The notes beneath the pieces are model-generated. The model searched no databases and was not told the origin of the DNA. It saw nothing but the letters and a program-made list of their open reading frames with translations. Position numbers and translations under genes: made by a program. A DNA stretch of 64,000 nt from Rhodosorus marinus CCMP1338 (Eukaryota > Plantae > Rhodophyta), in NCBI GenBank assembly GCA_029953675.1, contig JAMWBK010000013.1, positions 1,042,936 to 1,106,935 of the forward strand. Reading direction: 5' to 3'. Positions 2,003 to 64,000 of this stretch are shown here, piece after piece. Each line of letters begins with the position of its first letter. Within the stretch, counting starts at the first letter, position 1.

Positions 2003-5000
2003 TCAAAGGGTCTTCGCTTTGACGCGGAAGATATAAGCGAACAAACGGTCTACCGCAAACGACGCGACGGCATCGATTAAGATCCACTTAACCGTCTCGT
2101 AACGAAGCCAAGCGGCGGGCATCTTTACCAGCTCCGCAAAGGCGTTCAGCTCAGGGACGATCTCGAGGGCGAGCAGGAGCACCACGCAGAAGTTGACTAT
2201 GAGAGAATCTCTTAGCATCTTATTGTCCTGAAGGCCCTGCATGAATGGATATCCTTTGTAGTTGACCGCGAAAACGACAACTTGCTGAGCGGTCGATATG
2301 AGGAACACGATGGTATTTAGCACGTTTGGTTGAAAAGCGCCGTTGACATCTGGATCAAAGTCCATTGGCAAGTACTGTTTGGCAACCGAAACACACATCG
2401 CCAAGCACACCAGGTGAACGGCAAACTGCGCTATCAAAGACAGGAAAAGTGATGGATGGAAGACGGTTGTCGCCGGTCTCTGAGAGGAGAGCTTTTCCAG
2501 AGGCTGCTCATCGATACAAAAAGGGTCGGAATCGTGCTCTCAGTTGTCCGCGAGCCGGGCACGAAGATGGGTTTGCAAGAGCCAACTTACCTTTGCCCTG
2601 GTAATCAGGAAGAATGCACCAGCGATGGCAAGTCCAGAGATTGTCATTTGACGGTCGCCAAACTTGACGCCGTCAATGTACAAAACGGATAGACCATAAG
2701 CCGAGGTTAGGCAATCCAGTGCAAGAATTTGGTACATTTGCAACGTCGTGGCGAGAGTGCATCGGCCCTGAGGGTGAATGGGGTCCCAAGCAAGAATACC
2801 AGTAAGCCTCCCTTCCCGTGGGATAGAGAAGCAAAGTTTCACGTTGGAATGACAGTTAGTCCGTTACCTGTCGAATAATCACCGCGCAAGATTCGATGCT
2901 CATCTTCTTTGAGGTGAACGGTGACGCAATGGAAGCATCGCCCAGTTTCACCAGCTTTGGACCGTCCTCACCCATCATCTCGTCCAACTCCTTGAGCTGG
3001 GCCTCGAGCCTCTTCTTTAGTTCGCGTTGACGGCGCTCTTCAGGAGTAAGGTGGCTTAGATCTTCCTCCGGCTCTGGCGGAGGCGCACGTGCCTTTTTCG
3101 GGTTAAGCACTCCGCCGTTGGCACTCGAGGTCGACTCTGCCTTCTTCGTCTGTGACCCTGCGGCTGCCTTCTTCTTCGTCATGGGCTTTTCACTTGTTCT
3201 GGTTTTCGTCTTGCGCACTATTTGAGCAGTATTCTCAGGGCGCTGCAACTGCGGGCGCTGTTGGTTCGTCCCCTGTGTATGTGGGGCGCCCGGCTGTGCG
3301 ACGAATGAAAGAAGGGCAACGCCAACATGCGACTGTTTTAGGGCTCCGACATCGTTTGTCCCATCTCCGCACATCAACGTCGTAAAGCCTAGCAAAAGAC
3401 CATCAAGGTCAGCCACAACGAACACCTGCCATAAGAACACGACCGCATCAAAGTCGGCTTCTGAGACAAACCTTGATCCTTCAACTGTGTCAACACTCGT
3501 TCTTTGTTTTCAGGGGTCATACGAGCAAAGACCGTTGCATGAAGCACAAGCGCGTTGCGGGCTTTCTCTGACAAGCTAGTTCCGTCGAACACAAACCCAG
3601 GCACTGCAAGATCATATGTCTGAGACAGATCTCGCACCTTGGTAGAGGAGCAATGCAGAGGAATCAGACACTTGCTTACCCATCTTCGTTCCTGCTGTCC
3701 GTCGTCCTTACCTCAGCTAGATTGAAGAGCGAATGCCGATCCCCTGTGCGCGCGGATGACCATTGCAGTTCTTCCTTCTCCTTCTCTAGAATGAGCGTGC
3801 GCTTCCCAACCATGGAAACCTAAAAAAAACGCATCCTCCTTGATAAGAGAAAGATGCCATGGAGACCGAGCAAACTTTTCTAATACGGCTACCTCCTTAG
3901 CTACGTGGACAGCAGTTAAAACTGCATCTCCAGTAATCATGACCACCTTGTGGCTTGATCTGCGCAAGTTCTTCACCACTTTCTTCGAGTCTCCTCTCAT
4001 GGGACACTCAAACGCAACGAACCCAGCAAACACGAGATCTGTTTGTCGGGCGCGAATACGATCAGATCTCACGAGAAGCAACAGCTTGGTCCACAAAAAT
4101 GCTCGTACCTCGTTCAAGCTCCGCTCTTGTCGTCGCCTTCAGCTCAGATGGCGTCTTCGCGGGATCGAGATCTTTGTACGCGAGCGCCAAAACCCTAAGG
4201 CCTTGTCGAGCCAGGCTTAGCGCCGTAGCATCGTACAGGGGGGGCTTCGGCCCGGCTAGTAACTTTCCAACGGCCTCAGGCGACCCCTTCACAAGCCCTC
4301 GAGGTTTGAATGTCGTGCCGCCTTCTTGTACCTGCAATAAAAATTCAAGACATACTGGTCAGTATCCAAGTGCGCCATCGGCTTCCCAAGCAACAGGCTC
4401 ATGGTGAAGGTGTACCTCAACAATTGTGCTCATCCTCTGAAGACTGGAGAGAAAGCGAAACCTGTTGAGAATCTTCAATCCATTGCCCGAGCTTCCTTTC
4501 CTCGGAAAAGCAGCCTCAGATCTCGAGTAACCCCATTCCACTCCTACAAGCGCGGCAAGCTCAAGCGGGTCACCCACCAGCTCGTCATCCACAAAGACCA
4601 GCGAATGGCACCCGGCGAGCACACACGCTGCGCTGAAGCTAGCCTCGGTAGGCTTTACCAGCGTGTACTCTTAACGTCGTATAAACCTTTGATTAGATCG
4701 ATTCTCTCATAAAAGACAGATGTTTTGGCAACCCTTAACCTTACCATCAGCAGCTGCTGGGTCTTCGTCTCCGGGAGGGAGAGCCACTCCCGCAGCCTAG
4801 TCGATCACGAAAGGGGGTTCACACAGGCCGGCTAACGGTCAGCGAGCTAAAGATGATCTGCACCTTGAGCGAGGGAGCGGACGCAGACAAACCTTTATGT
4901 TGTCAGTCGTCAGGGTGCCAGTCTTGTCAAAGCAACAGACGTCCACCTTTCCCGCAAACGGAATTCTGAAAGGCTCTGTACAGAAAACCAGCTCCTGCGC

Positions 5001-6964
5001 CAACGCAAGCAGCGAGGAGTTGACCGCCAGAGCCAATTGCATTGGCAGTTGGGGCGGGATGACTGACGTAATGATCAGAATGCAGTGCAAAAGCAGCTTG
5101 TACTGGTCGCGGTCCTCGTCCTGCGGATTGTGAAGGCCATAAAGTAAGCTGAAAGCGGGTCCTGTAACCAGTTGTCCTTCGACCCGTCGCTCACCTCCAT
5201 TCCCTTGACTAGAACGTATCCGGATGCCACCACGGCGAAGACGAGCAGGAACAGAATAAAGAATGCTGCCTCCCACGAATCCGCAGATACCTATTTTTTT
5301 GGAGATACGGTCATCGCTGAGTAAGTTCGTTGGCTTTGAAATAAGCATACATTTCCGCAGACGACACTCGATGACATTACCTTCTCCGTGGATGCGAGGA
5401 TAGTCCTCAACAAGACGCCTTGTGAAGAAGAGTACCCTGTTCGAAGAACAAAGCAGACGCAGCCGTTATCTGGAGCTTTCGATGTCGGAGTTGCGTCTGA
5501 AATGGTCGCGGAAGTGTGCGTCAGTATCCGAGTTCCTCCAAAAAGAACGTGTGCTTTGTCCTCGGAGTTGAGCCGAAGTTCGCGATCAGCGTCCTAGACC
5601 ACCAAAACATTTCACATGCCTCGTCAGCCATCGAACACTCCTAGGAGCTTAGCAAAGCGTTCCAACTCACTCTGTCAGGCAGGGGAGCAATGCCTTCTTT
5701 CATGAGCGGTACAGATTCGCCCGTTAGCATGGCCTCATTGACAACCGCTCCTCCGCTCAGAATCAGACAATCACATGGTACGACCATCTACATGCCAAGG
5801 GGAACAACGGTCGAGTACTTCAGCACAGCTTCATTGGGAACAGAGAGGATTCCAAGTGATACACGTACATCTGGTGTCGACCCTCTGGTAAGCGAGATGA
5901 TGTCTCCGGGAAGCAGCTCGAGGGAGTTGATGGATACCCACTTCTTATTACGGTAAGAGCTGATCTTTGATGGTCTGTTCCTCATTCCTGAATGCATTTA
6001 GAGAATAAACTTTCCTGTTTAAGCCATCGTGACTCAGGAGAGAGTCTCATTGTCATCTTCGAGCACCTCGTAGCTCAGTCAAACTCCGAAGACGGCCCTT
6101 CACAACTGTTGCTTCGAAAATCAGCATCATGACAAGAGTCATCGCAAAATACTGCCAGTAGGCGTCAAGAACCCAGAGAAGGATGCAGAACACCTGAGGA
6201 ACAGGACGGATAGTCAGCAGAAGGTCTTATATGGTCATCTATGGATGGATTGTTTGGCTCACCTGAAAGACAAAAAATGGAGATAGAAGCTGCTCCTGGT
6301 ACAAATCCCAGAACCTTGGCAGAGGAATCTCGATTCTGTTCGTTCCGAAGCGGCTCATGACACGGAATTTGGACTCTTCATCTAGTCCTCCGGTTTTTCG
6401 AGCGTACTCAACGTAGTGCTTAAGAGGAAGGCTATCTGGCGGAAGCAGCTGTATTCGGAGAAGACGGGGCAGTATCGAATACTGAGTTTTGGTGTGTTTT
6501 TCGTATGAGAATTAGGCAGAAATCACCTGTTCAAAACAGCCTGTTTCTCGATTGTATTCATAGGTCAACATCTGGAAGCTAAAATGTATTCTCCCGTTAT
6601 CGATCTGTAGGGTTGTAAAGTCCGCCTTTCCGCGATGCGGGAGTGGGATGGCTCGAACCCTAATCTTTCCCTCGCTGATATCAGCTTCATCTTTTTCTCC
6701 AATGGATTTTAACGTCCCATGCCCAACCGCAACCCGCACCGAAAGGGACCAGTACTGCATCAAGAACACCAGGAGGTGCAAAACGACCAACACCACAGCT
6801 ACGAAGATCTCAAAAAGCCGAGGAATCTCATTCGTAGAGCAGGTCACCGCCCAGCCCAGGTAAAGAGCGACAAAGGGAAGGAAATCAAGCCTAGCTACCA
6901 GGGTCACCGGACGATGCAGGGATAACCCAGCTAGTGCTTCACCTTTCCACTCTGGAAACCCCAT
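2003..6964 (-). CDS. SPF1: P5A-type ATPase (Spf1/ATP13A1 family), multi-exon
   Basis: Motifs across successive minus-strand ORFs: [64 protein letters not shown], plus C-terminal TM helices. Short GT-AG introns, e.g. 6482-6526 (45 nt) and 6194-6262 (69 nt). Confidence 0.95.
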
Positions 6965-11357: not shown

Positions 11358-11587
11358 GGCTCAATTTCCTTTGCAGTTTAGTCCATATTTTCACCAACTC
11401 TCCTAACAAGATAGGTGACCCCAGCTCCTCTGTCTGGTAACTTCAACTATTCCTTACGCTATGGCTCCCTGGACTTTACGCCCTATAATTGAACAAGCGC
11501 AGACGCAAGCGGACCCCTTGTCCCAAAGAAGAAGATGATTGAAATCCTATCAATAGCGGTCATTGATTGAAAAATATTAGACGCCAG

Positions 11588-11776
11588 TAGGGCGCTATCG
11601 GACCGATATCATACAAACCTTTGTTTTTATTTCTTGTTCAACCCTGCGCACCATATATCGGACAGGAGCTTGAAGCAAATTTGGCTAATAATAACGTAAT
11701 GCACGTCCGATAGACGTTTTATATCAGACGATATCGGACTTTCTTCTTTTCTTATCGGACACATCGGACAACCCTA
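11588..11776. mobile_element. Small non-autonomous element with TAGGG...CCCTA ends and internal ATCGGA/TCCGAT motifs (hAT-like)
   Basis: Starts TAGGGCGCTATCGGA and ends ATCGGACAACCCTA. A related segment at about 15170-15293 also contains GATAGACGTTT and ends GACAACCCTA. No target-site duplication found. Confidence 0.35.
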
Positions 11777-18809: not shown

Positions 18810-20207
18810 ATGGACGTGGCTGAAGGAGGAGGGGAGAAATTCGCCACCGCGTACTTGGAGGTGGACTTGGGGGACAAGATTAAACGGATGACTTTTCGCA
18901 TATTCACAGACAAGGTGCCTAAGACTGCTGAGAATTTCCTAAGACTCTGCGATGGGTCTAAGGGAGTTGGGAAGAAGACGGGCGCGAACTTGCATTATAG
19001 GGGATCACCGTTTCACAGGATCATCAAGGGGTTCATGGTACAGGGTGGGGACATTTCGAAAGGGAACGGAAAGGGTGGGGAGTCCATATATGGAGGAAAC
19101 TTCGAGGACGAAGACATGAGTATAAAGCATGATCGCGTGGGCCTTCTATCCATGGCAAACAAGGGGAAGAACACCAACGGTAGCCAGTTTTTTATTACTT
19201 GCGCGGAAGCACCGCATTTGGACGGGAAGCATGTCGTCTTTGGAGAGCTGATTGAGGGCAGAGATGCACTCGAAAGTCTGGAATTTCTTGAGACAAATGA
19301 CGCAGAGGTACCGCTTAGGCCTGTGACTATAGCGGGTTGTGGGGTTCTGTCCGAGCCAATTCGTGACCGACAACTGTCTGACGTGGAAACTGAAAACGCA
19401 GACAGGCAAGCAGCAACATGGAGGTCTAGAGAAGATAGCCTTATGGATGACGACGGGGATGAGGATGACAAAAAGAGCCGAGATTGGCCATCCGGTGTAC
19501 ATAGGCGTGGACGTGGGTCGTTCAAATTTGTCACGGAAGAGGAGCAAGATCGCGGTGTTACTGTGGATGATCGACACGGGCCGAACAGAGCACCGGCACC
19601 AAAGAGACTTCACAGAGAAAGAAGGTTTGCAGGCGGACCACCGCAGAGTGGCCGGCGATTTGAGAGGCGTTTGGATGAGGCAGATACGGCCAGAGGAAGA
19701 CAAGGACATGGTGGGAAGCGGAGACATCTGGACGATATTCCCAGTCGAAGTCATGACGGTCCTGATGATGGGAGAGGGAAGAGACCTAGACGACGAGACG
19801 AGAATATGATTAATCGAGATGGAGACCGTCGAGGAGCTGGCCGTGGAGAGTTTACCGGCCAAGCGAGGGCAGCAAAAGATAATTTAGGCAGAGGAGAACC
19901 TCATGCGGACGATGTGGAAACAGGCGATGTAGAGTTTGATAGGAATGGTCGCGATGCCAGAATGGAATTGGACGGACCTCAGAGGGATGAAGGAAGACGC
20001 CCATTAGGGGACGGGCGGAGACTGTCGCGCGGAAAAGGAATGGTTTCAGAGCGAAAAGGTAACGACCGCTCCTGGGAACGTGACGGACGAGGGCACCGGG
20101 ACTCCTGGCCCCGGTTTCGATCTCGAAGCTTCGACGGCAGGGATCAGAGGTGGGGACGAGGAGGCAGGCGAAACCGTGAAGCGAGACGGGATAGGTCGCT
20201 GGACTGA
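18810..20207 (+). CDS. Cyclophilin PPIase with long Arg/Gly/Asp-rich C-terminal tail (nuclear splicing-associated type)
   Basis: VPKTAENFLRLC, FHRIIKGFMVQGGD, LLSMANKGKNTNGSQFFIT, HLDGKHVVFG. Confidence 0.95.
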   Translation: MDVAEGGGEKFATAYLEVDLGDKIKRMTFRIFTDKVPKTAENFLRLCDGSKGVGKKTGANLHYRGSPFHRIIKGFMVQGGDISKGNGKGGESIYGGNFEDEDMSIKHDRVGLLSMANKGKNTNGSQFFITCAEAPHLDGKHVVFGELIEGRDALESLEFLETNDAEVPLRPVTIAGCGVLSEPIRDRQLSDVETENADRQAATWRSREDSLMDDDGDEDDKKSRDWPSGVHRRGRGSFKFVTEEEQDRGVTVDDRHGPNRAPAPKRLHRERRFAGGPPQSGRRFERRLDEADTARGRQGHGGKRRHLDDIPSRSHDGPDDGRGKRPRRRDENMINRDGDRRGAGRGEFTGQARAAKDNLGRGEPHADDVETGDVEFDRNGRDARMELDGPQRDEGRRPLGDGRRLSRGKGMVSERKGNDRSWERDGRGHRDSWPRFRSRSFDGRDQRWGRGGRRNREARRDRSLD

Positions 20208-32404: not shown

Positions 32405-32620
32405 TGTGAATGAAGGTGTTTATTCGGAGACCAAAAAAAACAAGAAGGGGAACAAAGACTATTGAAGGCGAAGATCACGCGTCTCCAACATCAAAGCAAC
32501 TTTCATACGCCACAACAGGAAACTCAAATGGGTTAACAACGAGGAAGTCCGGTCGGGGCGCTCGCGGAAAATTCGCAAAGCGCCCCGAACCGACTGCGAG
32601 ATTGTGCTAACACAGAACCG
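32405..32620 (-). mobile_element. Diverged family C 3' end
   Basis: Reverse complement encodes a ...RERPDR...LSFLLWRMKVALMLE-like sequence and the C-type 3' UTR ending in TTCATTCA. Confidence 0.75.
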
Positions 32621-37541: not shown

Positions 37542-39640
37542 TTCCTGGTTGGGCGTATTGTTTGAAGCCCGGTCACACGGACTCGAGTGCGCGATTCGTC
37601 CAATTGGGATGGTTGAAGTAGTCCGGAAACTGGTGGCAAAGTGGTTGGTGAAGCTCCTCGTCCCCGAGTCCCACCGTTTCTTGGGGCACTCGCAGCTAGG
37701 CGTGTCTGTCGGGGTGGATGCGAGTTATTGTCCGTCCTCCTACGCTCAGAAATGGCATACTCCCCGGATTTCGGGTTAGTGTCTGTAGATTTTAGGAACA
37801 CATTCAACCGCGTCTCTCGCCCGGGTGTCATACATGTGGTGCGACAGGTCTTCCCTGTAGTATTTCCCGTTGCTAGCCGTATTTACTCTTCGCATGGTGA
37901 TCTGGAAGTTAATCACTGCAAATCCTTCTACTCGAGCGGTGCAGATGCCCACGCGCAGCAGGTTCCGGCGTCGTTCAAAGATATTTCGAGACGGGAAGGT
38001 TTTGTCCATTTGGGCATCCCGTACGGGTCGCCGTCCTTTGTTGAAGGCGAGTTGGTGACGCTATCTGGTAAGCACAGACAGCTGGTCTCGCAGCTCCGTC
38101 GGTTGCCTCTTGGCTTCTTGAGTTCTCGTTGTTGCTTTATCGATATCGTTGGAGTCAGCGGCTCATCTACTGGTTCCGCTCGCTCCCGACTCAATGGGTC
38201 CGGTGACTGGCCACCCGTACGACGACGAGAGCTTTGGTGAGCAGGGATAATTCTTAGATGAGGAGCTAGGTCACATTTCGCGCCCCACCCATGCTGTTGT
38301 TCGTGCCCAAGTAGGTCTCCCCCTCCGTTTGGGCGGTCTAGGCCTCTGTACCCGTGCTGTAAACCAACCAGCGGCCGTGGTCGGGTGGTGGGGCGCCGCC
38401 CTCCCCACGTTGAGCACGCTTGGGGGTGTCAACTTTCCGGAAGTTGGAGGTCGGTCTTTTTAGTGATGATCTACACTCTAGTGTCCCTGACAGTGCCCGT
38501 GGTTTGTTCCTCGAGCTCCAATCGGCGATGTTATTCTGCACCAGCCTCCCTGCCGACCTGCAGCCCCGCCTGGGTGGCTGGCGAGCTGTTTTTGCTCGTG
38601 TTGACGGCCCCTCGCCGCGACCAGCTGCCGGTCCTGTGCCTGCGGCGCTTGATCCTGTGATTGCTGGGGAAACTGAGGTCCCTCGTGATCTTCCTGATGA
38701 TGGACCGGGTTCTGGGAGTCGCGTTTCCGCACGCACGGATGGGTGCAAAACACGCTTTCTTGGGACTTGCACCGTGCTGCCTACAGCCGACTTCTCGCAC
38801 AGATGGTCTCATCTTCCCGAGATTCCGCCCGCCTGCGTAGTCTTGGAGGTGTACTAGCTCTCAGTGGCTCATGACCGTCCCTGCTTTTCCGCCACTCCCA
38901 AATCGCCGATTTCGAAGTGCGCACTTCCCTGCGCTTATATCTCGGCTTGCATTAGCCGCCATGGCCTTCCGAGATGGGTTCTTCGTGCCCTCTATGCTCT
39001 CAGAACGAAGACGCCGCGGATTTTGGCGCCCACCTGGTCGCCAGCTAGCTGCTGTGCAAGGCGACCGAACCCGACGACATGCGCGGATCTTGAACCTGTT
39101 ATACCGCGAACTTCGGCCTATCGTACGGCAAGCCGGTCTTGAAATTGAACCTGAGAAGTCCCTGCCTGTCGCGGACTACCAAAATGATGAACGCCGAGTG
39201 GCTGATTTCGCGGTCACCTGTGCTGATAGCCGCCGTACGACGAACGTTCATCTTGCAGTTCCTAATCCTCAGGCTAGTCGTTATTTGCCGGCTGCGGGAG
39301 AGCGCCGTGGATTTGCCAATGCCAGTATGAGTGGTAGGAAAGAGTTGAAATATGCGGAGGCGATGTTTTCCCAGGCATTCGCGCTTTCCCTCAACAAGCT
39401 CATCGCCTAGTAACTCTGGTCATCGAGTGCTTTGGGTTTCTTTATTCCGTTGGTTCTCGTTGGCTTGGGGAATTGTTCGAACACTCTGACCGTCTCTCGT
39501 CGTTCTTTACCCGTTTATGTTTCTTGCTGTGGCGTATGGACGCTGCTTTGATGTTAGAGGCGTGCGAGCTTCGCCGCGAGCAGTCTTTTTTTTCCCCTCG
39601 AGGTTTTTTCTTTCAATCTCCGTTTAAAAGATTTCATTCA
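37542..39640 (+). mobile_element. Degenerate family C-type element, RT core deleted, REL and 3' end present
   Basis: RPIGMVEVVRKL, VDFRNTFNRVSR, LGIPYG, LPLRLGGLG, VADFAV...VPNPQASRYLP, then a C-type 3' UTR ending ATTTCATTCA. The QGD/DD motifs are absent. Confidence 0.85.
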
Positions 39641-39827
39641 GTTTGACATCGCGCTCCCAGCGTCGCCCTCAAGAACGTCAGCTCCAGCAGATCGGCTTGA
39701 AATCCACGGTCAGCAGTAGGTTAAATGGCTTTACATGTTTTCTAACAACAGCACTAACTTAGACTTAAGTGTGCTAACGCAAGGCATAGTATAGGCCAGG
39801 AACGAGGCAATTCTGCATCTGTGTCTC

Positions 39828-40437
39828 TCACAGTCTGGGGTTACACACGACAAAAAGCTCACATACGGCAATGTCAGGTCCCTTGGCGACTCTGCGAGTG
39901 CAGTCATCTTCGACGTTCAACTCTGCTCTCAACTGTTCGCCATCTGCTTCCTTGACGATGGCGTGGGCAATGAGAAACAGAGGGGCAGCTTGACAACATC
40001 CCGCGTCGTCCGCCTCTATCTCGTTCTCACAGATAACTAAGCTCAACTTGTTCACAGGGGTGCCACTCGGAAGGCCCTTTTTCGTCAGGAACTTCTCAAC
40101 GTTCCTCCGGTTCGGGTATTCCACAGGTTCAGGGATGAACTCCTCCTTCGTGAAGATTCCCCCTCTGATGCTCACCAACGAGTACCTCTCCTCGACCCGG
40201 AATGTCATCCGAAAGCACGTTTTTGAAGCACGTTTTTGAAACGGTTCCCGGATCTCTTGAAACGACAACATCGCCAGCCGATGCAGAGACACCGGCGATA
40301 ATGAGCTTGCCAACGCGTTCCTCCACCAGGTCAATGTATAGACCGTTCGCAGCGGAAACATCTTCGCATGTCTGGAATTCTGCGGATACCACACACAGCA
40401 ACGCCACCGCACAACAATACCATGCCACCGATTTCAT
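39828..40437 (-). pseudogene. Secreted Cys-rich protein, paralog of the 51624-55234 gene, frameshifted
   Basis: Signal peptide MKSVAWYCCAVALLCVVSA. A 13-bp tandem duplication (40214-40226 / 40227-40239) splits the ORF; removing one copy joins ORFs 40129-40437 and 39828-40412 as ...GTVSKTCFRMTF.... Confidence 0.8.
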
Positions 40438-47153: not shown

Positions 47154-47605
47154 GCTGAATGAATGGTTTAATCGGAGGCTGAAAAAAAAACCCCGAGGGG
47201 AAAAAAAGACTAAGCGCGGCGAAGTACTCGCGCCTCCAACATCAAAGCGGCATTCATGCGCCACAGCAGGAAACTTAAGCGGGTAAACAACGATTGAAGA
47301 CGGTCAGGGCGTTCGCGGAACAACGCGCGGCAGGGGTACCAAGCGCTAGCTAGCCTAGCTAGCGCTTGGTACCCCTGATCATTGAGTGCTTTGGGTTCAT
47401 GGACTCTGTTGGTTCTCGCTGGCTTCGGGAGTTGTTCCGCGAACGCCCTGACCGTCTTCAATCGTTGTTTACCCGCTTAAGTTTCCTGCTGTGGCGCATG
47501 AATGCCGCTTTGATGTTGGAGGCGCGAGTACTTCGCCGCGCTTAGTCTTTTTTTCCCCTCGGGTTTTTTTTTTTTTTCAGCCTCCGATTAAACCATTCAT
47601 TCAGC
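47154..47605. repeat. Fold-back of two family C 3' ends with a central palindrome
   Basis: Arms 47154-47324 and 47431-47605 are reverse complements apart from homopolymer length. 47331-47377 is a 23-bp perfect inverted repeat with a 1-nt spacer. Confidence 0.93.
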
Positions 47606-48001: not shown

Positions 48002-49683
48002 TCACTTGCACTCCAGGAATCTCATGGTTGACCACGGTAGTCAGTGTTCGCCCGTACACAGTGCACTTGCCGAGTTGCAGGCGTGCTCCGAGAGAGGGGA
48101 GCACAGTTTTTGCCCATGCCAGGGATGCCTTCAAGGCTTGTAGCGACCCGACAATCCTGATATCGTCGTGGATAGCAACAATCGTTTCGTTGGGGAACTT
48201 GGCTCCCAACGCTCTTAGAAAGGGCGCCAGGGATAGTGCATGTAGCACCGGCCCCAGTGGATCTTCCTGTTGGACTCCTGTAGCTGCTTGGAGGGTCAGG
48301 CGAGAGGTGTCGGTTTCGTTCTGTCCAGGGGAAGATCGCCAGCCACAGAGCGTCGGTGAGTCCGCGTTGTCGCTTCCATAGCCAAGTCTATACACTGGTG
48401 CAAGCTCCGGGAAGTGCTCGTCCACCAGTTGCTTGGCAAGGCGTCGGTCGATGCGATTGAAGGCATTCTCCAGGTCTAGCCGAAGGACCACCGAATCGGG
48501 TTCGCATGACAAACGGGCCTGGATCACGTGAAGTGAGCGTTCGCACCCGCCACTTCCTCCAATACCCAGTTGTAAGGGCACCAGGAGCTCACGCACCCTG
48601 TCCAGAACCGCGTGAAGAGTCCATTGCGTTGCTACCTTGCGCAAAACTTCTGGTACTCCGATAGGGCGAACTCCGGGATGTTCATGCGGCACTGAACCCT
48701 TGTTAGGCTTCGCGAACGGCAGGAGTCGACTGCTGCGAAGGGCGCGGGTCAGAGCCGGGGAAAATTTCTCCGGAGCGGTCGCCAGTTGTCGCAATACACG
48801 AATCAACGCCGCTTGCGTCTGTTGAGTTGCACCTTGGAGGTGTTCCGCTGGGAGACCGCTAGGGCCTGGGCTCTTGCCCTGAGGAAGACGTGCCACGATC
48901 GACATGAGGCCCTCGTCGGCCGCTTTTCTTGAATCCCACCGCCGCTTAAGTGTTTCGGTGTTCAGGGCCAGCAAAGATTCCAGGGCTTGTGCAATCTCGT
49001 CTGGTAAGTCACCTTCCGCCGGGTCGGGAAAGAGCGCTTGTATTTGTCTCCACGTAGCCGCGGTAAAAGGTGCCATTTCGGTGGCCTGTAGGCTCCGAGC
49101 TGCATCTGAAAGGCGGCCAAGGTGTGCTAGTTTCAACGCTCGCTTGTGGCGCCCAAGATGTTGGCGTCGAACCGCTTCAGCTCCTTGCGGTGCGGTAGTA
49201 TGCGACAGCATAGACGCCTTGTCCTCTAGAGCGCTCCAGACCGTAGAGAATTCTCCTTCAAGCACATGCGATACCTGAATGCCAACATCAAGTGCAGAGT
49301 GTCCAAGGACAAGGCCTGGAAGTCCGACAAGAAGCAGGCTGGCGTTTGTTGGTGCGGTGCTGTCCATAGAGAGCTCTAATGCAGCTCGGAAGAGGCAGCT
49401 CCATGTATGGACCTGGCCGCGTGGCACAAATTGCCGTGTGGGAACAGGGCAGTGTGTAAGGCGCGTCCACTGCCTGCCTCCTTCCGTGACGTCGTCGACG
49501 AAGACGCTCCACCGTCTGATCCAGTCTTGACGATCCGAGAAGAACAGAGGCTCGTCGCGGCGTCGTTTGATTCCCCTACGTCTGCTCGGCATTATTGCGC
49601 TGGGTTTTCCTGGCTCTCCTGCGTGTCCATTGCGTGATGGTTGCCGTCAAGGGCAACCTGTGTCACAGTGGTATCCTGTGGAG
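48002..49683 (-). mobile_element. Inverted 5' segment of a family A copy
   Basis: 533-aa minus-strand ORF 47991-49592 is near-identical to 33855-35450. The left junction is a telomere repeat (47989-48002). Confidence 0.93.
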
Positions 49684-50673
49684 GCAAGTGACCAGAGACG
49701 GAGTCACCATCCACTCGATACCGATAGGCAGCCGAGAATATATCGAACAGGAGTGCCGGGGGCTGCAAAATAAGCATGAGAAACTCTTTGAGGAAATTGC
49801 CAAGCTACCACAACCGGAGCTTACGACGCAAATTGCACTCTTCAGGTTCTGTGCGGAAACGCGGCTAGACTATGTTCTACGATGCCTCGCATACGAGTTT
49901 GGAAGAACTCTGGCACGCGAGGCCGATGTGATAACCAGATATCATCTGGAAATTCTATTCGGAGGCCTCGCTACGACGGCTGTAGAGGACGACGAGTACG
50001 CAGAGCTGATCTCGGACCAAATCGCTCTGCCCTGCCGCTGGGGGGGGTTGGGTTTCGCTACTCGAAAGCGCGTCCAACCCATCGCGTTTTACTCGTCATG
50101 GAGAAACACCTTCCGGAACAATGAAGATGAATGGCCATACCTGACTGAACTAGAACGGGAGGTTTCGGCAGAACGCCCACCAGACACATACGAGCCGACG
50201 GAGCAGCGATGGTCGGCTGCACAGCTGGCGGACCAGATCTGTGCATCGTCGCGAGCAATACAACGGAGACTCGGACCAGAAACCCCGCCGCGGATCTTGG
50301 CACTGACTACCCTTCAACCACCACGCGAAACACCTCTTCGAAACGCACCGGGCGAGACTGCAGCTTGGAATAATGGTTCAATACAACAAACCCTCTCTCG
50401 AGAGGCACACCATTGTCCATTCCAAAGGTTGGTCACCAAGCCACGAATCTCCCCTGAAAACCGAGCTCGAATGCGGTCCGCCGCGGGGTCCGGGTCGGGA
50501 GTCTGGCTGCGTGAAATACCAACGCTGACACCGAAAAAATTGAGTGCGGATGAGATGCAGGTAAACGTTCGACAACTGCTGGGGCTGCCAATTCCGGGAT
50601 TGCGAACCACCGAGAAGTGTACTGGTTGCCGGAGTAAACACGGAAGGACTGGGGTACAACGGTTTCATCACTG
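49684..50673 (+). mobile_element. Forward segment of the same family A copy
   Basis: Resumes at GCAAGTGACC, where the inverted segment stops; near-identical to about 35435-36480 without the B-tail insertion. Confidence 0.92.
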
Positions 50674-51623
50674 CCCACCGGCAGTCCTGACCAGAACTCT
50701 CCGCATCAGCAGGCTTCTGCCGTTTGTCAAGTGCTCTACTATTGGGCCCCCACCTGCGAACCCTGCTGTCAGATTTATTGGCGTTCCTGAGGTCCTACGA
50801 ACGCTGGCGACACAGTGGGTACTAGATCACCTGACCACACGACTTCGGGAGCTCTTCGTGCCTCTGCAACTAGCCCTTGCCGTCAGTGGAGGTTGCGAAC
50901 GGTCCCTGCACGCAATATAGGCCCATCTCTACTGTGAACCATAATTGGCAGTTCTACGATTCGACCTGGCGAATGCATTCAACCGAATTGATCGGCGTAT
51001 TGCTAAACAACTAGTCGACCGCCATTATCCAGAGCTGGCAACCATCTACCGCCTGGGATATGGAAGCAACTGCGAGGACTTATCTACGCTCCTTGGCTGG
51101 CGCCCCAAAGCTACAGACGGAGCACTGCACCCAGATCGACCACACCTGCAAGCGCAGACGGGAGCAGAACAAGGAGATCTTTTGGGACCTGGCTTACACG
51201 CCCTCTCACTGGCGCCTTTTCTCGAAGCACTGCGGCAGAAATACCCTGAGCTGACTACTGTCGCCATCCATGACGATATCACGCTCGTGAGCCCCCTGGA
51301 GTCTCTGAAAGCTGCCCTACTGTGGAGTCGAAATGCCCTCCCTACCATTGGGGCGGGAGGCTCGCTCCCACCAGTTCCAACTTTTCATTGTGGAAAGCTT
51401 TGGTCACGTGGAGAAGTCGGGTTTGGAGTCGTTGCGGAAATGTTTCGCTAAGCATCCGGTTGAATACTTGGAACTTTTGCGGCGTTTAAGTGTCTCTCTA
51501 GGGCGATATTCGAGCAGCAAGCTGGTCGAGGCGCGTCATCGGCGCCTGGGTTTCCACGCTTCCCCACCTAGTTCTTCGTTCCTTTTCACGCCTTGCGTAG
51601 CGTTTCAGGCTATGCTATAAAAG
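50674..51623 (+). mobile_element. Chimeric segment: diverged A-like RT (to about 51335) fused to a diverged B-like 3' end
   Basis: RFIGVPEVLR, FDLANAFNRIDR, EQGDLLGP and AIHDD, then SHQFQLFIVESFG and a B-type tail GCGTAGCGTTTCAGGCTATGC. Confidence 0.85.
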
Positions 51624-54600
51624 TCAAAAACCAGGAAGGTCAGAGGAACGTATGGCACAAGTCCCGTTTCCCGATCGAACAACATCCTATCGCGTGTGAA
51701 AAAAAAGAGGAGAGCACAGTAGGAAAACGTGAGCGATCAGATATCTACGCTGGAGTATCAACGATAAAGGGCCTCATATGAAAAACCCGTATGGTCGTTT
51801 CTATACATACAACTTGAAGTCCCGTGCAATCCCTCCTTTGGCAAAAGTTGTCAATAATTCCGTCGATTGGTATACAGGCGAAAGTCTCAAAAGGCCCAAA
51901 ATCCAGGCATTCGACATTCGAGCAAGGGCTTTCGCATGTACAGAACCCATCTTGGTTCGTCCCAATCTGGAAAACAAAAGGCACCAAACAGTCCGCTGTT
52001 AGGCTCGTCCATATGATATATATAGCCGTTTTCGTCGTTGGGCTTGTGATAGAGTTTTATCTTACGAAGTGCTGAGGACATGATTCACCAAATGTCGTGA
52101 CATCCGTGCAGGCACGATCTGCAATGCAATTCGCTTCTGTGCCACAGTCAAGTTTCTTACAGGTACATTGCCGGTTCTGGGTGTCCGCAACAGCAATCTA
52201 AACAGAACAACAGGAACATGCAGAGTTTAGGACTCCGAGAAAGGGATAAACCTCTTCAAGATTGGTTTAGAAGCCATCATCAGCGATTTGCGGCTCGATA
52301 TACCGAATCAGCTGCGCAGTTTGCTTCGGAAAATTCGTCAAGCAGAACGCGGTCTTCTCCGAGCAAGCAAAAACCAGGAAGGTTAGAGGAACGTATGGCA
52401 CAAGTCCCGTTTCCCGATCGAACAACATCCTATCGCGTGTGAAAAAAAAGAGGAGAGCACAGTAGGAAAACGTGAGCGATCAGATATCTACGCTGGAGTA
52501 TCAACGATAAAGGGCCTCATATGAAAAACCCGTATGGTCGTTTCTATACATACAACTTGAAGTCCCGTGCAATCCCTCCTTTGGCAAAAGTTGTCAATAA
52601 TTCCGTCGATTGGTATACAGGCGAAAGTCTCAAAAGGCCCAAAATCCAGGCATTCGACATTCGAGCAAGGGCTTTCGCATGTACAGAACCCATCTTGGTT
52701 CGTCCCAATCTGGAAAACAAAAGGCACCAAACAGTCCGCTGTTAGGCTCGTCCATATGATATATACAGCCGTTTTCGTCGTTGGGCTTGTGATAGAGTTT
52801 TATCTTACGAAGTGCTGAGGACATGATTCACCAAATGTCGTGACATCCGTGCAGGCACGATCTGCAATGCAATTCGCTTCTGTGCCACAGTCAAGTTTCT
52901 TACAGGTACATTGCCGGTTCTGGGTGTCCGCAACAGCAATCTAAACAGAACAACAGGAACATGCAGAGTTTAGGACTCCGAGAAAGGGATAAACCTCTTC
53001 AAGATTGGTTTAGAAGCCATCATCAGCGATTTGCGGCTCGATATACCGAATCAGCTGCGCAGTTTGCTTCGGAAAATTCGTCAAGCAGAACGCGGTCTTC
53101 TCCGAGCAAGCAAAAACCAGGAAGGTTAGAGGAACGTATGGCACAAGTCCCGTTTCCCGATCGAACAACATCCTATCGCGTGTGAAAAAAAAGAGGAGAG
53201 CACAGTAGGAAAACGTGAGCGATCAGATATCTACGCTGGAGTATCAACGATAAAGGGCCTCATATGAAAAACCCGTATGGTCGTTTCTATACATACAACT
53301 TGAAGTCCCGTGCAATCCCTCCTTTGGCAAAAGTTGTCAATAATTCCGTCGATTGGTATACAGGCGAAAGTCTCAAAAGGCCCAAAATCCAGGCATTCGA
53401 CATTCGAGCAAGGGCTTTCGCATGTACAGAACCCATCTTGGTTCGTCCCAATCTGGAAAACAAAAGGCACCAAACAGTCCGCTGTTAGGCTCGTCCATAT
53501 GATATATACAGCCGTTTTCGTCGTTGGGCTTGTGATAGAGTTTTATCTTACGAAGTGCTGAGGACATGATTCACCAAATGTCGTGACATCCGTGCAGGCA
53601 CGATCTGCAATGCAATTCGCTTCTGTGCCACAGTCAAGTTTCTTACAGGTACATTGCCGGTTCTGGGTGTCCGCAACAGCAATCTAAACAGAACAACAGG
53701 AACATGCAGAGTTTAGGACTCCGAGAAAGGGATAAACCTCTTCAAGATTGGTTTAGAAGCCATCATCAGCGATTTGCGGCTCGATATACCGAATCAGCTG
53801 CGCAGTTTGCTTCGGAAAATTCGTCAAGCAGAACGCGGTCTTCTCCGAGCAAGCAAAAGCCAGGAAGGTTAGAGGAACGTATGGCACAAGTCCCGTTTCC
53901 CGATCGAACAACATCCTATCGCGTGTGAAAAAAAAGAGGAGAGCACAGTAGGAAAACGTGAGCGATCAGATAACTACGCTGGAGTATCAACGATAAAGGG
54001 CCTCATATGAAAAACCCGTATGGTCGTTTCTATACATACAACTTGAAGTCCCGTGCAATCCCTCCTTTGGCAAAAGTTGTCAATAATTCCGTCGATTGGT
54101 ATACAGGCGAAAGTCTCAAAAGGCCCAAAATCCAGGCATTCGACATTCGAGCAAGGGCTTTCGCATGTACAGAACCCATCTTGGTTCGTCCCAATCTGGA
54201 AAACAAAAGGCACCAAACAGTCCGCTGTTAGGCTCGTCCATATGATATATACAGCCGTTTTCGTCGTTGGGCTTGTGATAGAGTTTTATCTTACGAAGTG
54301 CTGAGGACATGATTCACCAAATGTCGTGACATCCGTGCAGGCACGATCTGCAATGCAATTCGCTTCTGTGCCACAGTCAAGTTTCTTGCAGGTACATTGC
54401 CGGTTCTGGGTGTCCGCAACAGCAATCTAAACAGAACAACAGGAACATGCAGAGTTTAGGACTCCGAGAAAGGGATAAACCTCTTCAAGATTGGTTTAGA
54501 AGCCATCGTCAGCGATTTGCGGCTCGATATACCGAATCAGCTGCGCAGTTTGCTTCGGAAAATTCGTCAAGCAGAACGCAGTCTTCTCCGAGCAAGCACT

Positions 54601-55234
54601 CATCCGTGCTGCAATTGATGCCGTTGTCGCAGGTAGCTTGTAGGGTGCAGACTTCGCGGAACGGTTTCGTGGGGTCCGGCACTCTGCAAGGGACGGTTGA
54701 GCCTTCAACCCGCTTCATGTATGCCCGCACACGCGTTCCATTCATAAGGACCACAGCATATGCGTACAAATCAAACAAGCTCTCTCCGCAGCACGATTTG
54801 GACTCCTCCACGGAGATGTCTTCGGGGCAGATGCCTATACGGCCCTTTCGAAGCGTTGTGATCTCGGTTCCAGAAACATCCGTCGTCCTCGGGAATCTAA
54901 CATCCCTCCTCCTCGTGAATCTATCCCGTCCAGTGGGTGGCGACTCATCTGCCGATGAGAAGATTCCTACCCTGAGCTGCGCAAGACCAACATTTTCCAC
55001 TGTTGTAAAAACCGCCCGAAAGCAGTTCGTGTCGGCCTTCTCCACCACTCTCAGCTCGATACCTCCTAGCACTGTGCCGTTCCTGTCCGCCAAATCCGCA
55101 TTGAAGATACCCGAAGCAAATCGTGTGAACGCGGGCACTACATCACAAGTTTCAAGGTCGCATCTCACAATACAACAGTCAACGCAACCCAACAACGTCA
55201 GGCTCAATACAACGAGTGTAACAGATCTTAACAT
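51624..55234 (-). CDS. Secreted Cys-rich protein, about 764 aa, 13 exons, with a tandemly repeated 138-aa three-exon module
   Basis: Exon 1 is 55234-54533 (signal peptide, 234 aa). Then exons of 132, 156 and 126 nt are separated by phase-0 GT-AG introns of 106, 99 and 124 nt; 414+329 = 743, the repeat period. Stop TGA at 51626-51624. Confidence 0.85.
51626..54597. repeat. 4 x 743-bp near-identical tandem array (coding module)
   Basis: Identical ORF sets recur every 743 bp; only a few substitutions separate the units. Confidence 0.97.
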
Positions 55235-55733
55235 CTCTCTTCTTACAAACACCCGCACTCGTTCCGTCCAATTCCTCCTTTCCGACGAACAAAAACTCCT
55301 ATCAGTGCCATGCTGAGCAGAATACTTTACCTTAGCTGCCCCTCCAACCTGCCCATTCTCATCCAGCTACCACATCCGAAGCACAGCGAACTTAAACCCT
55401 ACTTGCGGAAGACGTCCTCCGAATCTGTATATAGACGATAGCAACCACCTATGAAATAAGCGCTCACCACCTCTAACCGCAGCCCCTCGTCTCAAGCGGA
55501 AGCAACATCACGCTTTCCCCCCCCTACGGCTGGGGTAAAATTCGAACCAGTAAGCTACTAATGACGCCAGTAAAGCGAGCCAGCTAATAAACCCAGAACA
55601 AAACTAGATCAAAACGGAAACTACTGAATCTCGGATTGGCTGGATCATCCAACCTATCGGTTTTATTGGCATCCAACACATCAACGGCCTTTTCTGCTGA
55701 GCGACGACCATAGTCTGTCAAAACTCAGTATGC

Positions 55734-56061
55734 AGAGGCTCCACCGGCGTTTACGGAGCGAGTTCTCCGCTGAGGACATCGACTGCGATAACCCCAGACT
55801 GCGAAAAGGGATGAGCGTCTAACGACATTTTGGTGGTCTCTGATTGGCTGTATCCACTTTTCCAAAAAATCACGAATAATTTGAAACCCACCGGAGGACG
55901 CTGCAGAGGACAACCCGCACGCGGAGCTTTTGGAGAAGTGGATACAGCCAATCAGAGACCACCAAAATGTCGTTAGACGATCATCCCTTTTCGCAGTCTG
56001 GGGTTATCGCAGTCGATGTCCTCAGCGGAGAACTCGCTCCGTAAACGCCGGTGGAGCCTCT
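55734..56061. repeat. Inverted repeat, 134-bp arms with 60-nt loop, each arm carrying a 12-nt telomere core
   Basis: 55734-55867 is the reverse complement of 55928-56061 with about 2 mismatches. TAACCCCAGACT at 55789-55800 and AGTCTGGGGTTA at 55995-56006. Confidence 0.93.
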
Positions 56062-56065
56062 AACG

Positions 56066-56560
56066 TACGTTAGTCTGGGTACGTAGTGATCGTGTGATGC
56101 GCTACATTAGGTAGCTGCCCAATAAAGGCTACGGGGTTATAGCGGATACGCGGCGAGAGCTGCGGAGAAGTGGAAAATCGCTCACTACAAAGAAGCGATG
56201 GTGATCGAGAAACCGGATGATAAGTTCATCCCGATAGCGATAGAGACGTTTGGGCGTACGGGGCAAATGGCACAAGAGTTCCTCCGCGACAGCTGCAAAC
56301 ACCTCCTGCACAGGAGTGAGGAGCTGAGAGACGTGAGATCCCAGATAAACCGGCAACTATGGCGAGGTAACGCAGAGATAGCATTAGGCGCTTTGCGCGT
56401 GGACCAGCTGGAGAATCCGCTGGTGCCTGTTTTTTCTTTTGAACGTAGCATGAGACCCCGGTAGCGGGGTTCCAGTAAGTTTTTCCCTAGATAGGATTAG
56501 ACGTAGTGTTGCGCTGCAGTAGGCAGCTGCCCAGTAAAGCTTACGGTTACGTTAGTCTGG
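56066..56560 (+). mobile_element. Telomere repeat, diverged A-type tail, GGGGTTA, 5'-truncated family A 3' end, telomere repeat
   Basis: TACGTTAGTCTGGG at 56066-56079; diverged tail 56080-56133; A fragment about 56140-56545, near-identical to 36716-37119; GTTACGTTAGTCTGG at 56546-56560. Confidence 0.9.
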
Positions 56561-56571
56561 TTTTTTTTTTG

Positions 56572-57530
56572 TGTCGAGGCTCTCGCAGCAAAAGCTGTAG
56601 GCCTTATTTGCGCCATTGGTAGGCAAATAATACTTACAGAAGCTTAACCAACAAGGGAGTCTGATTCCGACCTGTCAATGGTGGCTTCCAACAGGCGGCG
56701 GTCTGCCAGTCGGATGGGAAGGGCCCAATGTACACATGTCTTGTATCATTGCAGAGTACCTGTCGCGCATACCATATTTTCATAGTCTGCGCCAGGACAA
56801 GGCGCTTCGGTTGCAGATGATGGCGTGCGCTTGTACCGTGGGCCTTGCGTCGTCGTTTGGTTAGATGAATGCTCAAGTCTCGACAACGCAGCTCAAAATT
56901 GTTTTTCGTGCTAGTCGTGCGTTGACTTCTGGTTGCCTCTCTCTATGCTGGATTTTATTTTTTTTACAGGTACTCCTATTGCGCCGTTCTGTACGCGTTG
57001 GAGTCTACATCCTCTTTCTATCTGGTTCCGACTTTCTGGAAATCGGTTCTAGCGACGATTTCGGGAGCGATGGTCTTCGATATTTGGTACAAGACTCCAG
57101 TGGCAGAGGCGTTCGAAAATACAAACTTTGGCCCAGATGACTATCGAAAAAACCAACTGATTTTGTTTTGCTTGCTTGGATCTTTTATGGGTTGCCAGCG
57201 CGATTTATATCAGTGTATATACCATACAAGCCCACCGTGTTCTCCTCCTTCCCAAGATTCGTTTATCTGAGTTGCTCACTGTGACGCATCTGGACATTGG
57301 CTTTTATGCTTCCGGTCAACACGAACATTCCAAAAAAACAACAGGGATCGTGGGAGCCTTTTTCGTCAAGTGTACGCATGAGGTGTACCAGTTTCGCAAG
57401 CGGAGGTTGACATACTTGTCGAATCGATTTGTTCTTGTTGGAGTTGTGGCGCTCGCGTCTGGTCTCACGCAGTACAACAACGAACTCCCGAGAATTGACC
57501 CGCGAAAGGCAATTAACGAGCTCTTTTCAT
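56572..57530 (+). pseudogene. Intron-retaining partial duplicate of the CLC gene (29853-30813)
   Basis: About 960 bp, near-identical including introns, with a 1-nt deletion in GGCGCC, an altered donor (GTACGCC to GTTGCC) and an L-to-P change. Confidence 0.95.
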
Positions 57531-58176: not shown

Positions 58177-58639
58177 TCTGGGTTTATCTCGAATGCAGGT
58201 TCAGGTATCAAATTTTCAGGATCAGCTTTTTCTGGTTTTCTGGTTTCTCAAACGGTCTCTGGTTGCGGGCTCATATTCGTCAGGGTTTCTGGTTATATAG
58301 GATTCCTCTGGTTCAACTGGTTATATAGGATTCCTCTGGTTCTTTTCTGGTTCTAGTAGTACTGGGCTCACTTTTCAGGTTCGCATAATGGTTCCTCAAT
58401 CGCAACTTGGGATGAGACCAGATTTCACGTCTCCAACAGCCAGCTGGGTATTACTCAAATTATCCCATATTTCGAGTTTTATTCCCCCCTAATTACTCCC
58501 AAGTTAGGTAATATATCCCAATTCTATCTTGTTCTTCTCTATCTTCTTCTTCTTCTCTCCAGCTAACCTGGGAAATATCGAGTTTGCCCATCGTACTTAT
58601 ACTCTTGCTCCATCGGGATGTGCAATAACTATTAAGCTC

Positions 58640-59070
58640 AAACGAACGAATGGTTTAATCGGAGGCTGAAAAAAAAAAACCCGAGGGGAAAAAAAGACTA
58701 AGCGCGGCGAAGTACTCGCGCCTCCAACATCAAAGCGGCATTCATGCGCCACAGCAGGAAACTTAAGCGGGTAAACAACGATTGAAGACGGTCAGGGCGT
58801 TCGCGGAACAACTCCCGAAGCCAGCGAGAACCAACAGAGTCCATGAACCCAAAGCACTCAATGATCAGGGGTACCAAGCGATGTGCTAGTGCCGAAGCAC
58901 GAACACCAGGGGAAGACAAAGCCCCCGCGTATTTGATCTCTTTGCGGCGTCTCATGCTGGCGGCGGCAGATCCACGGCGCTCCCCCGCAGCCGGGAGATA
59001 ACGACTAGCTTGAGGGTTAGGAACAGCAAGATCAACGTATGTGGTACGGCGGCTGTCGTCACAGGAGCTC
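58640..59070 (-). mobile_element. Family C REL domain and 3' end
   Basis: TYVDLAVPNPQ...LIIECFG...LEARVLRRA*, tail AAACCATTCGTTCGTT. Confidence 0.92.
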
Positions 59071-63662: not shown

Positions 63663-64000
63663 GGTTACGTTAGTCTGGGGTTACTCCAACTGGGGTTACG
63701 TTAGTCTGGGGTTACGTTAGTCTGGGGTTACGTTAGTCTGGGGTTACGTTAGTCTGGGGTTACGTTAGTCTGGGGTTACGTTAGTCTGGGGTTACGTTAG
63801 TCTGGGGTTACGTTAGTCTGGGGTTACGTTAGTCTGGGGTTACGTTAGTCTGGGGTTACGTTAGTCTGGGGTTACGTTAGTCTGGGGTTACGTTAGTCTG
63901 GGGTTACGTTAGTCTGGGGTTACGTTAGTCTGGGGTTACGTTAGTCTGGGGTTACGTTAGTCTGGGGTTACGTTAGTCTGGGGTTACGTTAGTCTGGGGT
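63661..64000 (+). repeat. Telomere, (TTAGTCTGGGGTTACG)n, about 21 units
   Basis: Perfect 16-bp period running to the end of the sequence, G-rich strand pointing outward, with one variant unit near 63685-63700. Confidence 0.93.

Follow-up and report, generated by a model that had tools for sequence, protein, structure and literature searches.

A young, in-frame tandem amplification of a multi-exon, cysteine-rich unit within a predicted secreted-protein gene near a chromosome end of Rhodosorus marinus

Does a tandem repeat with a 743-nucleotide (nt) unit, lying close to a chromosome end of the red alga Rhodosorus marinus, belong to a gene, and would it change the encoded protein? We addressed this question for an array, known from one assembly (GCA_029953675.1), in the final 64 kb of contig JAMWBK010000013.1 of strain CCMP1338 (record positions 1042936 to 1106935), referred to below as the window. 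An initial annotation made from the DNA letters had described the repeat as an intragenic, in-frame module of three exons created when a stop codon was turned into a cysteine codon. A direct period scan and the spliced reading frame bore out the in-frame module: the array has the form of a coding multi-exon tandem repeat (an intragenic macrosatellite), with its units arranged head to tail inside one gene. We consider it fairly probable that it represents a young intragenic tandem amplification in a lineage-specific secreted-protein gene, and that this gene is transcribed and spliced to give a product of 764 amino acids (aa).

The array was found by a repeat search and by the period scan, in which each base was compared with that 743 nt further on (w[i] = w[i+743], i = 51625 to 53855). 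The period of 743 nt held over positions 51625 to 54598, i.e., over 2974 nt, or 4 x 743 + 2. Tandem Repeats Finder, which handles periods up to 500, did not call it. The two inner copies (52368-53110 and 53111-53853) are identical, while the copy at 51625-52367 differs from them at two positions and that at 53854-54596 at five. The four-fold near-identity over 743 nt is far beyond chance; the in-frame state alone is a 1-in-3 event.

Each unit, read on the minus strand, comprises 132 + 156 + 126 = 414 nt of exon and 106 + 99 + 124 = 329 nt of intron, in agreement with the earlier description of exons of 44, 52, and 42 aa which, with three phase-0 introns, sum to 743 (Table 1). The frame is kept from unit to unit because the duplicated stretch comprises 414 nt of exon and all three introns, each complete and in phase 0. 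The predicted gene begins with an ATG at 55234 (the translation of exon 1 starts MLRSVTLVVLSLTLLG) and ends with a TGA at 51626-51624, and all its introns are of the GT..AG type, in phase 0, with pyrimidine tracts and CTAAC/CTAAA branch-like sites. Splicing in silico gave a predicted coding sequence (CDS) of 2295 nt with no internal stop, which confirmed the proposed growth from about 350 to about 764 aa, the single-unit version being 350 aa long and the four-unit version 764 aa. Every unit contributes 138 aa, with 16 Cys residues and one NGT sequon. With intron 1 of the first unit (U1) left unspliced, the frame stops at the TGA at 54511-54509, giving a 241-aa product. The junction-specific tryptic peptide SSNLPGFCLLGEDR occurs three times in the predicted 764-aa product and is absent from the one-unit protein.

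Table 1. Coordinates of the array, the predicted gene, and the surrounding features (window positions unless a paralog locus, L001, L002, or L004, is named)
Feature	Position	Strand	Remarks
Tandem array	51625..54598	-	4 x 743 nt + 2 nt TG microhomology
Units in gene order	U1 54598-53856, U2 53855-53113, U3 53112-52370, U4 52369-51627	-	
Original Cys-213 codon TGC (STDE-C-LLGED)	54596..54598	-	Upstream breakpoint of founding duplication
Junction codon TGC (LPGF-C-LLGED), U1/U2	53853..53855	-	Same junction at 53110-53112, 52367-52369
Terminal stop TGA after ...SSDLPGF	51624..51626	-	TAA at homologous place in paralog L001
Predicted CDS span	51624..55234	-	13 exons, 12 introns, 764 aa; record JAMWBK010000013.1:1094559-1098169
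Signal-peptide-like N-terminus MLRSVTLVVLSLTLLGCVDCCI	55169..55234	-	n-region with R, 13-residue hydrophobic core; pattern kept across family
Exon 1	54533..55234	-	234 aa: signal peptide, N-domain, first Cys module ...CDNGINCSTDECLLGEDCVLLDEFSEANCAADS
Intron 1 of U1	54427..54532	-	106 nt, GTATAT..TTTAG, phase 0; repeats 53684-53789, 52941-53046, 52198-52303
Exon A	54295..54426	-	44 aa, 6 Cys; repeats 53552-53683, 52809-52940, 52066-52197
Intron 2 of U1	54196..54294	-	99 nt, GTAAGA..CCAG, CTAAC branch-like site, phase 0; repeats 53453-53551, 52710-52808, 51967-52065
Exon B	54040..54195	-	52 aa, 7 Cys; repeats 53297-53452, 52554-52709, 51811-51966
Intron 3 of U1	53916..54039	-	124 nt, GTATGT..ATAG, phase 0; repeats 53173-53296, 52430-52553, 51687-51810
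Chimeric exon C	53790..53915	-	42 aa, former last exon DVVRSGNGTCAIRSSNLPGF joined to CLLGEDRVLLDEFSEANCAADS; repeats 53047-53172, 52304-52429
Terminal unfused exon C	51624-51686	-	
Paralog gene spans	L001 10001-11377; L002 10001-11330		Incomplete public models
LINE-like reverse-transcriptase element, 3' end	51357..51622	+	Tail to tail with array gene; begins 2 nt past stop codon
Chromosome-end repeat (TTAGTCTGGGGTTACG)n	63670..64000	+	16-nt unit, ~19 copies
Dispersed ~480-bp repeat, window copies	39150-39700, 47155-47604, 58638-59065, 583-690, 32435-32545		
Dispersed ~480-bp repeat, paralog-locus copies	L002 11714-12190, 17346-17821; L004 4570-5045; L001 8300-8684		

The origin of the array can be read at its junctions. 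The source codon, Cys-213, stands in the context GAG TGC TTG; the three internal junction codons are TGC as well, each preceded by GGx TTT, and the terminal copy reads GGT TTT TGA. The LPGF-TGA of the last copy and the LPGF-TGC-LL of the internal junctions were thus found at the codons as claimed. The 2 extra nt of periodicity are due to the TG common to the stop codon and the Cys-213 codon. The proteins closest to the predicted product are P0001 (NDN08_004059, encoded at locus L001; 89% identity) and P0002 (NDN08_004881, locus L002; 57%), both of them R. marinus hypothetical proteins. The two paralogs have exactly one unit each; both consist of exon 1, homologs of exons A and B, and a short last exon, ordered and spaced as in the array gene. 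L001 ends in ...VYPF-TAA where the array gene ends in ...LPGF-TGA, and the sequences following the two stops are homologous; the single-unit gene is therefore older, and the LPGF-C-LLGED junction is derived. The presence of a stop at the homologous position of both single-unit paralogs supports the proposal that the stop codon was replaced by a Cys codon through the TG microhomology.

The units differ from each other at seven positions. Two of the differences are synonymous (53859 and 54388) and two non-synonymous (51641, N/D; 54580, C/R), which matches the exonic counts noted at the outset, and three are intronic (52023, 53973, and 54508). When polarized against L001 and L002, U1 shows the ancestral state both at the Cys of GEDC and at the variable base of intron 1. 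U2 to U4 share at least two derived states, the Arg codon CGC (54580) and a C-to-T change, on the gene strand, in intron 1 (54508). Private derived changes are found in U1 (one, in intron 3) and U4 (one, in intron 2). Since U2 to U4 have derived states in common that are absent from U1, the array grew in at least two steps, and the history indicated by these markers begins with the founding duplication, after which the second copy acquired a few substitutions and was then itself amplified. A model in which the inner units arose by a single unequal crossover was rejected, as the marker pattern along the unit does not fit it. The divergence among units is 0 to 0.7% (0.7% for U1 versus the others), compared with an intron divergence of about 10% and a synonymous divergence per site (dS) of about 0.1 between the array gene and L001; the array thus arose long after the paralogs had separated, and the idea of a recent expansion is upheld. 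The length variability proposed with it is conjectural, as a single assembly contains the locus. The ancestral Cys in place of Arg would give 17 Cys residues per unit instead of 16, which suggests that the C-to-R change may remove an odd cysteine. A parity argument for the cysteines of the whole mature protein was dropped, the cleavage site lying among extra Cys residues and not being placeable.

We then compared window positions 54040-54532 with L001 10697-11314 and L002 10652-11261 and found the introns to be more conserved than the module exons. Relative to L001, introns 1 to 3 show 97, 84, and 89% identity and exons B and C 75 and 63%; relative to L002, the values are 81 and 83% for introns 1 and 3 and 63 and 44% for exons B and C. 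In exon B, the non-synonymous divergence per site (dN) from L001 is 0.375 and dS is 0.117, a ratio of 3.2 (Nei-Gojobori; 36.5 non-synonymous and 3.5 synonymous changes), an excess that is not significant (Fisher p 0.07). For exon 1, dN/dS versus L001 is 0.54. Across modules the Cys positions are invariant, while the other residues diverge. Together, these comparisons suggest that the Cys scaffold stays fixed while the residues around it diversify, which would suit an extracellular protein of recognition or of the matrix. The conserved introns were also considered as dispersed "introner"-type elements, an explanation that was discarded, as in all the DNA examined they occur only in genes of this family.

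The paralogs also bear on splicing. All the GT and AG dinucleotides (six per unit) are conserved in both L001 and L002, and conserved intron gives way sharply to diverged exon at the predicted boundaries. The public model of NDN08_004881 (gene of 901 nt, 262 aa) contains a 112-nt intron at the site homologous to intron 1, exon 1 ending at L002 10651 and exon A starting at 10764, and in the model of NDN08_002777 (P0005) two introns occupy the positions that correspond to introns 1 and 2. Two R. marinus open reading frames (ORFs) from transcripts of the Marine Microbial Eukaryote Transcriptome Sequencing Project (MMETSP), P0003 (394 aa) and P0011 (424 aa), are complete and join the N-domain directly to at least three modules, and their module borders (...CEPNA/AAAVD... 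and ...CPRDS/IAAVD...) correspond to the exon borders of the array gene. For intron 3, the basis consists of conserved GT/AG sites and open frames in the paralogs only. The exon-intron pattern is thus well supported for the family, and for the array gene itself it is predicted. Three public models, P0001, P0002, and P0009, end in translated intron and are probably truncated. In the case of P0009 (NDN08_003744), the C-terminus closely matches the intron-1 read-through of the related gene NDN08_002777 and is probably a translated intron itself.

An exhaustive HMMER/phmmer search placed the predicted product in a family of 17 clusters (E values of 1e-134 to 4e-6), of which every member looked up is from R. 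marinus (genome or MMETSP transcripts); a profile search with the N-domain detected no relatives outside this species. In all members, a signal-peptide-like start precedes the N-domain, which is about 175 aa long, and the number of Cys modules ranges from zero to about seven. The N-domain has invariant residues C30, L48, G90, and C148-C149 and the motifs LKLRAGIF, RFTRR, DICP, CCG, and KKPFRxVCT, all of which the array protein fits. The initial annotation had spoken of a secreted surface protein. Secretion is supported by an evident N-terminal signal peptide that is conserved in the family and falls in a helix (residues 2-22) of the AlphaFold model. The surface location was not supported: neither a hydrophobic tail nor an anchor signal is seen at the C-terminus (...AIRSSDLPGF), and no transmembrane segment follows the signal peptide, so that a secreted or matrix protein is the furthest that the sequence would support. 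Elsewhere in the family, the MMETSP transcript protein P0013 carries a long Pro/Ser/Thr-rich insertion, TPPPSSSTTPPPSSS..., within the N-domain (about residues 165-250) and a poly-Pro tail; these recall hydroxyproline-rich matrix glycoproteins and hint that the family may have a role in the extracellular matrix.

AlphaFold2 with the family alignment gave a confident, beta-rich N-domain and modules built as hairpin pairs, the predicted local distance difference test score (pLDDT) being 86 to 94 at residues 211-290, while residues 296-350 were poorly predicted. When the junction segment was modeled, the chimeric partial module kept the hairpin and helix of its parent (pLDDT 70 to 80). Foldseek returned only generic beta-sandwich matches for the full model, those to the N-domain having E values above 1e-3. 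For the junction segment it ranked NELL2 EGF1-6 first (E value of 4.5e-4, but a TM value of 0.14), followed by uromodulin, Notch, Pfs25, and TNFR-type proteins. No Pfam family, EGF included, matched the array protein at E values up to 1, none matched P0003 or P0011 at E values up to 10, and a sequence profile search of the PDB gave no match. The UniRef names Pherophorin and DOMON (P0017, P0008) were not adopted, as no such Pfam family was found for P0017, P0008, P0007, or P0013 at E values up to 10, nor was the name EGF-like, given in UniRef to some members, as Pfam did not reproduce it.

Taken together, the observations are consistent with the following course of events. The ancestral gene had four exons, as do its paralogs: exon 1, two exons that encode Cys modules, and a last exon that is short. 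A segment of 743 bp, from codon 213 to the second base of the stop codon, was then duplicated head to tail at the 2-nt TG microhomology, probably by microhomology-mediated end joining or replication template switching, whereby the stop TGA was replaced by the TGC of codon 213. Further units were probably added once homologous units were present, through slippage or unequal exchange between sister chromatids. Transcription of the gene is presumed, with its short introns spliced locally, as in transcripts of the family, and its putative product would be a 764-aa secreted or matrix protein with EGF-like hairpin modules. Evolution in this family seems to act on the number of modules and on their surface, so that the array would lengthen an extracellular binding or structural rod.

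Several points weigh against this course of events. The array gene has no model in the genome annotation of CCMP1338, produced by BRAKER under the guidance of RNA sequencing data (PMC10250338); the protein collection lacks both the 241-aa read-through and the 764-aa product, and the homology search brought up no relative encoded in the window. The transcript support comes from family members, none of it from the array gene, and the models of the closest paralogs read through intron 1 (P0001) or intron 2 (P0002), perhaps because expression is weak or introns are retained. Retroelement fragments surround the locus, 8 to 9 kb from the end of the chromosome, and such surroundings are often silenced. 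In the AlphaFold model, confidence falls below 50 in the second half of exon B and at the head of exon C. The seven substitutions that postdate the duplication (four exonic, three intronic) show no sign of constraint. As the main rival explanation, the array could be real and have no consequence for a protein, the gene being silent, decaying, or expressed as the unspliced 241-aa product, and the repeat being a subtelomeric satellite derived from the 3' part of the gene. We regard this as unlikely, while giving it serious weight: it would explain the missing gene model, it has a precedent in the model of P0001, which is exactly such a read-through product, and it agrees with the surroundings rich in transposable elements (TEs), the equal per-site counts of exonic and intronic substitutions since the duplication, and the prior of 1/3 for an in-frame state. 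It is opposed by the 13/13 open exons and 24/24 intact splice dinucleotides, by the dN/dS of exon 1, according to which the gene was constrained until recently, and by the multi-module family members that are complete ORFs in transcriptomes. Intactness is nevertheless weak evidence either way, since decay would not yet be visible in so young an array.

Two further explanations concern the number of units. The assembly was made from Oxford Nanopore reads (6-kb size selection) with NextDenovo and polished three times by Pilon with 100-nt reads (PMC10250338). As the latter cannot be placed within the array, the identity of the inner units may be overstated, and given that two inner units are identical, the true locus might have fewer (two or three) or more of them. 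That the copy number is an artefact of this kind seems very unlikely to us, since there are three unit types (U1, U2=U3, and U4) whose differences make phylogenetic sense against two outgroups, the array measures 3 kb versus the 6 kb at which the reads were size selected (PMC10250338), and the TGC junction sequence could not have been assembled at all unless one junction or more is real. Alternatively, donors could pair with acceptors of later units, yielding a mixture of isoforms with one to four units rather than a single 764-aa protein. Donor-acceptor pairs of the same class are identical between units, and skipping of whole units would stay in frame since all introns are in phase 0. The introns are short, however (99 to 124 nt), and intron-definition splicing of short introns favors pairing of the nearest sites; we take such a mixture to be highly improbable. 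We continue to favor a spliced gene with a 764-aa product. One may go further and see in it the very start of a repeat protein on which selection already acts. The array would then be a functional extracellular rod of tunable length, encoded by a contingency gene in the subtelomere of a unicellular red alga, possibly with unit-skipping isoforms. The founding junction left a partial module with three Cys residues, and the only residue-changing substitution common to all derived units removes one Cys (C to R); it could be a compensatory fix that preceded further amplification, and selection at birth would accord with the faster-than-intron evolution of exons B and C. We hold this extension to be doubtful.

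The array lies about 9.4 kb from the contig end. The locus is subtelomeric because the 16-nt repeat TTAGTCTGGGGTTACG terminates the contig, with its G-rich strand pointing toward the chromosome end; the first terminal repeat begins 8.4 kb beyond the ATG of the gene, in support of the subtelomeric location stated initially, for which the label recombinogenic, also given there, is conjectural. A 16-nt unit is unusually long for a telomere-type repeat, and the literature searched contained no printed occurrence of the string in six rotations/strands. The neighbors of the array are reverse-transcriptase and Ty3-gag fragments. On the 3' side of the gene lies the 3' end of an element resembling a long interspersed nuclear element (LINE), noted in the window at 49595-51400 as well. 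Since it begins 2 nt past the stop codon, the 3' untranslated region of the gene is TE derived, and the duplication has its 3' breakpoint where gene and TE meet. The same 235-bp LINE-like piece follows the stop codon of L001, and further 5'-truncated copies are found nearby in L001; the L001 positions of these sequences are 4603-4851, 5230-5482, 5820-6071, and 11378-11605. A search of Rfam with window positions 50000-57000 gave no match.

The window contains a second, divergent family member, consisting of the N-domain only (39840-40340, minus strand, 14 kb from the array; ...KTCFRMTFRVEE...DAGCCQAAPLF...VCELFVVCN), and a cyclophilin ORF (18810-20207). A dispersed repeat of about 480 bp, with 75 to 83% identity among its copies, follows several of the family genes at a distance of a few hundred bp and is found at other places in the subtelomere too.

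Among known systems, the closest in form is the kringle IV-2 repeat of human LPA, which is a coding multi-exon tandem repeat. Both consist of head-to-tail intragenic units of hundreds to thousands of bp that comprise whole exons and introns, have an exonic length that is a multiple of three, and encode a disulfide-rich extracellular module per unit. The Rhodosorus array differs in having only four, nearly identical copies, read in one assembly, and in its founding junction, which is still readable and lies inside an exon; the repeat is C-terminal because this junction erased the stop codon. The gene also resembles those of yeast FLO/ALS-type adhesins in being subtelomeric and in encoding a secreted protein with in-frame tandem repeats able to change length by recombination. 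The FLO/ALS repeats are short, intron-less, and Ser/Thr-rich, and the proteins are glycosylphosphatidylinositol anchored, whereas the Rhodosorus unit is 743 bp long, has three introns, is Cys-rich, and comes with no visible anchor signal. Proteins with tandem EGF-like or TNFR-like domains (NELL2, uromodulin, Notch, and Pfs25) were the top structural neighbors of the predicted product, in a weak match; its modules of about 40 aa with six Cys residues may resemble theirs in forming beta-hairpin pairs strung into a rod, as predicted. Unlike them, the product has no Pfam EGF match and has a short helix after each hairpin. Chromosome ends are sites of gene duplication in red algae of the Cyanidiophyceae as well; in that study (PMC9812998), the duplications are of whole genes, in extremophiles, whereas that in Rhodosorus, a mesophilic stylonematophyte, is of an internal exon block.

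A literature search on tandem duplications that erase a stop codon returned nothing specific. The array is a clean, young case of a well-known route to repeat proteins and no new mechanism or system; what is particular to it is the legible founding junction, the erased stop codon, and the single-unit paralogs that serve as controls. It thereby offers a fully readable start of a protein repeat, with one stop-deleting microhomology junction followed by homology-driven expansion. Its practical value lies in the re-annotation of a secreted-protein family found only in Rhodosorus, which would gain one unannotated gene and have its truncated models, NDN08_004059, NDN08_004881, and NDN08_003744, revised.

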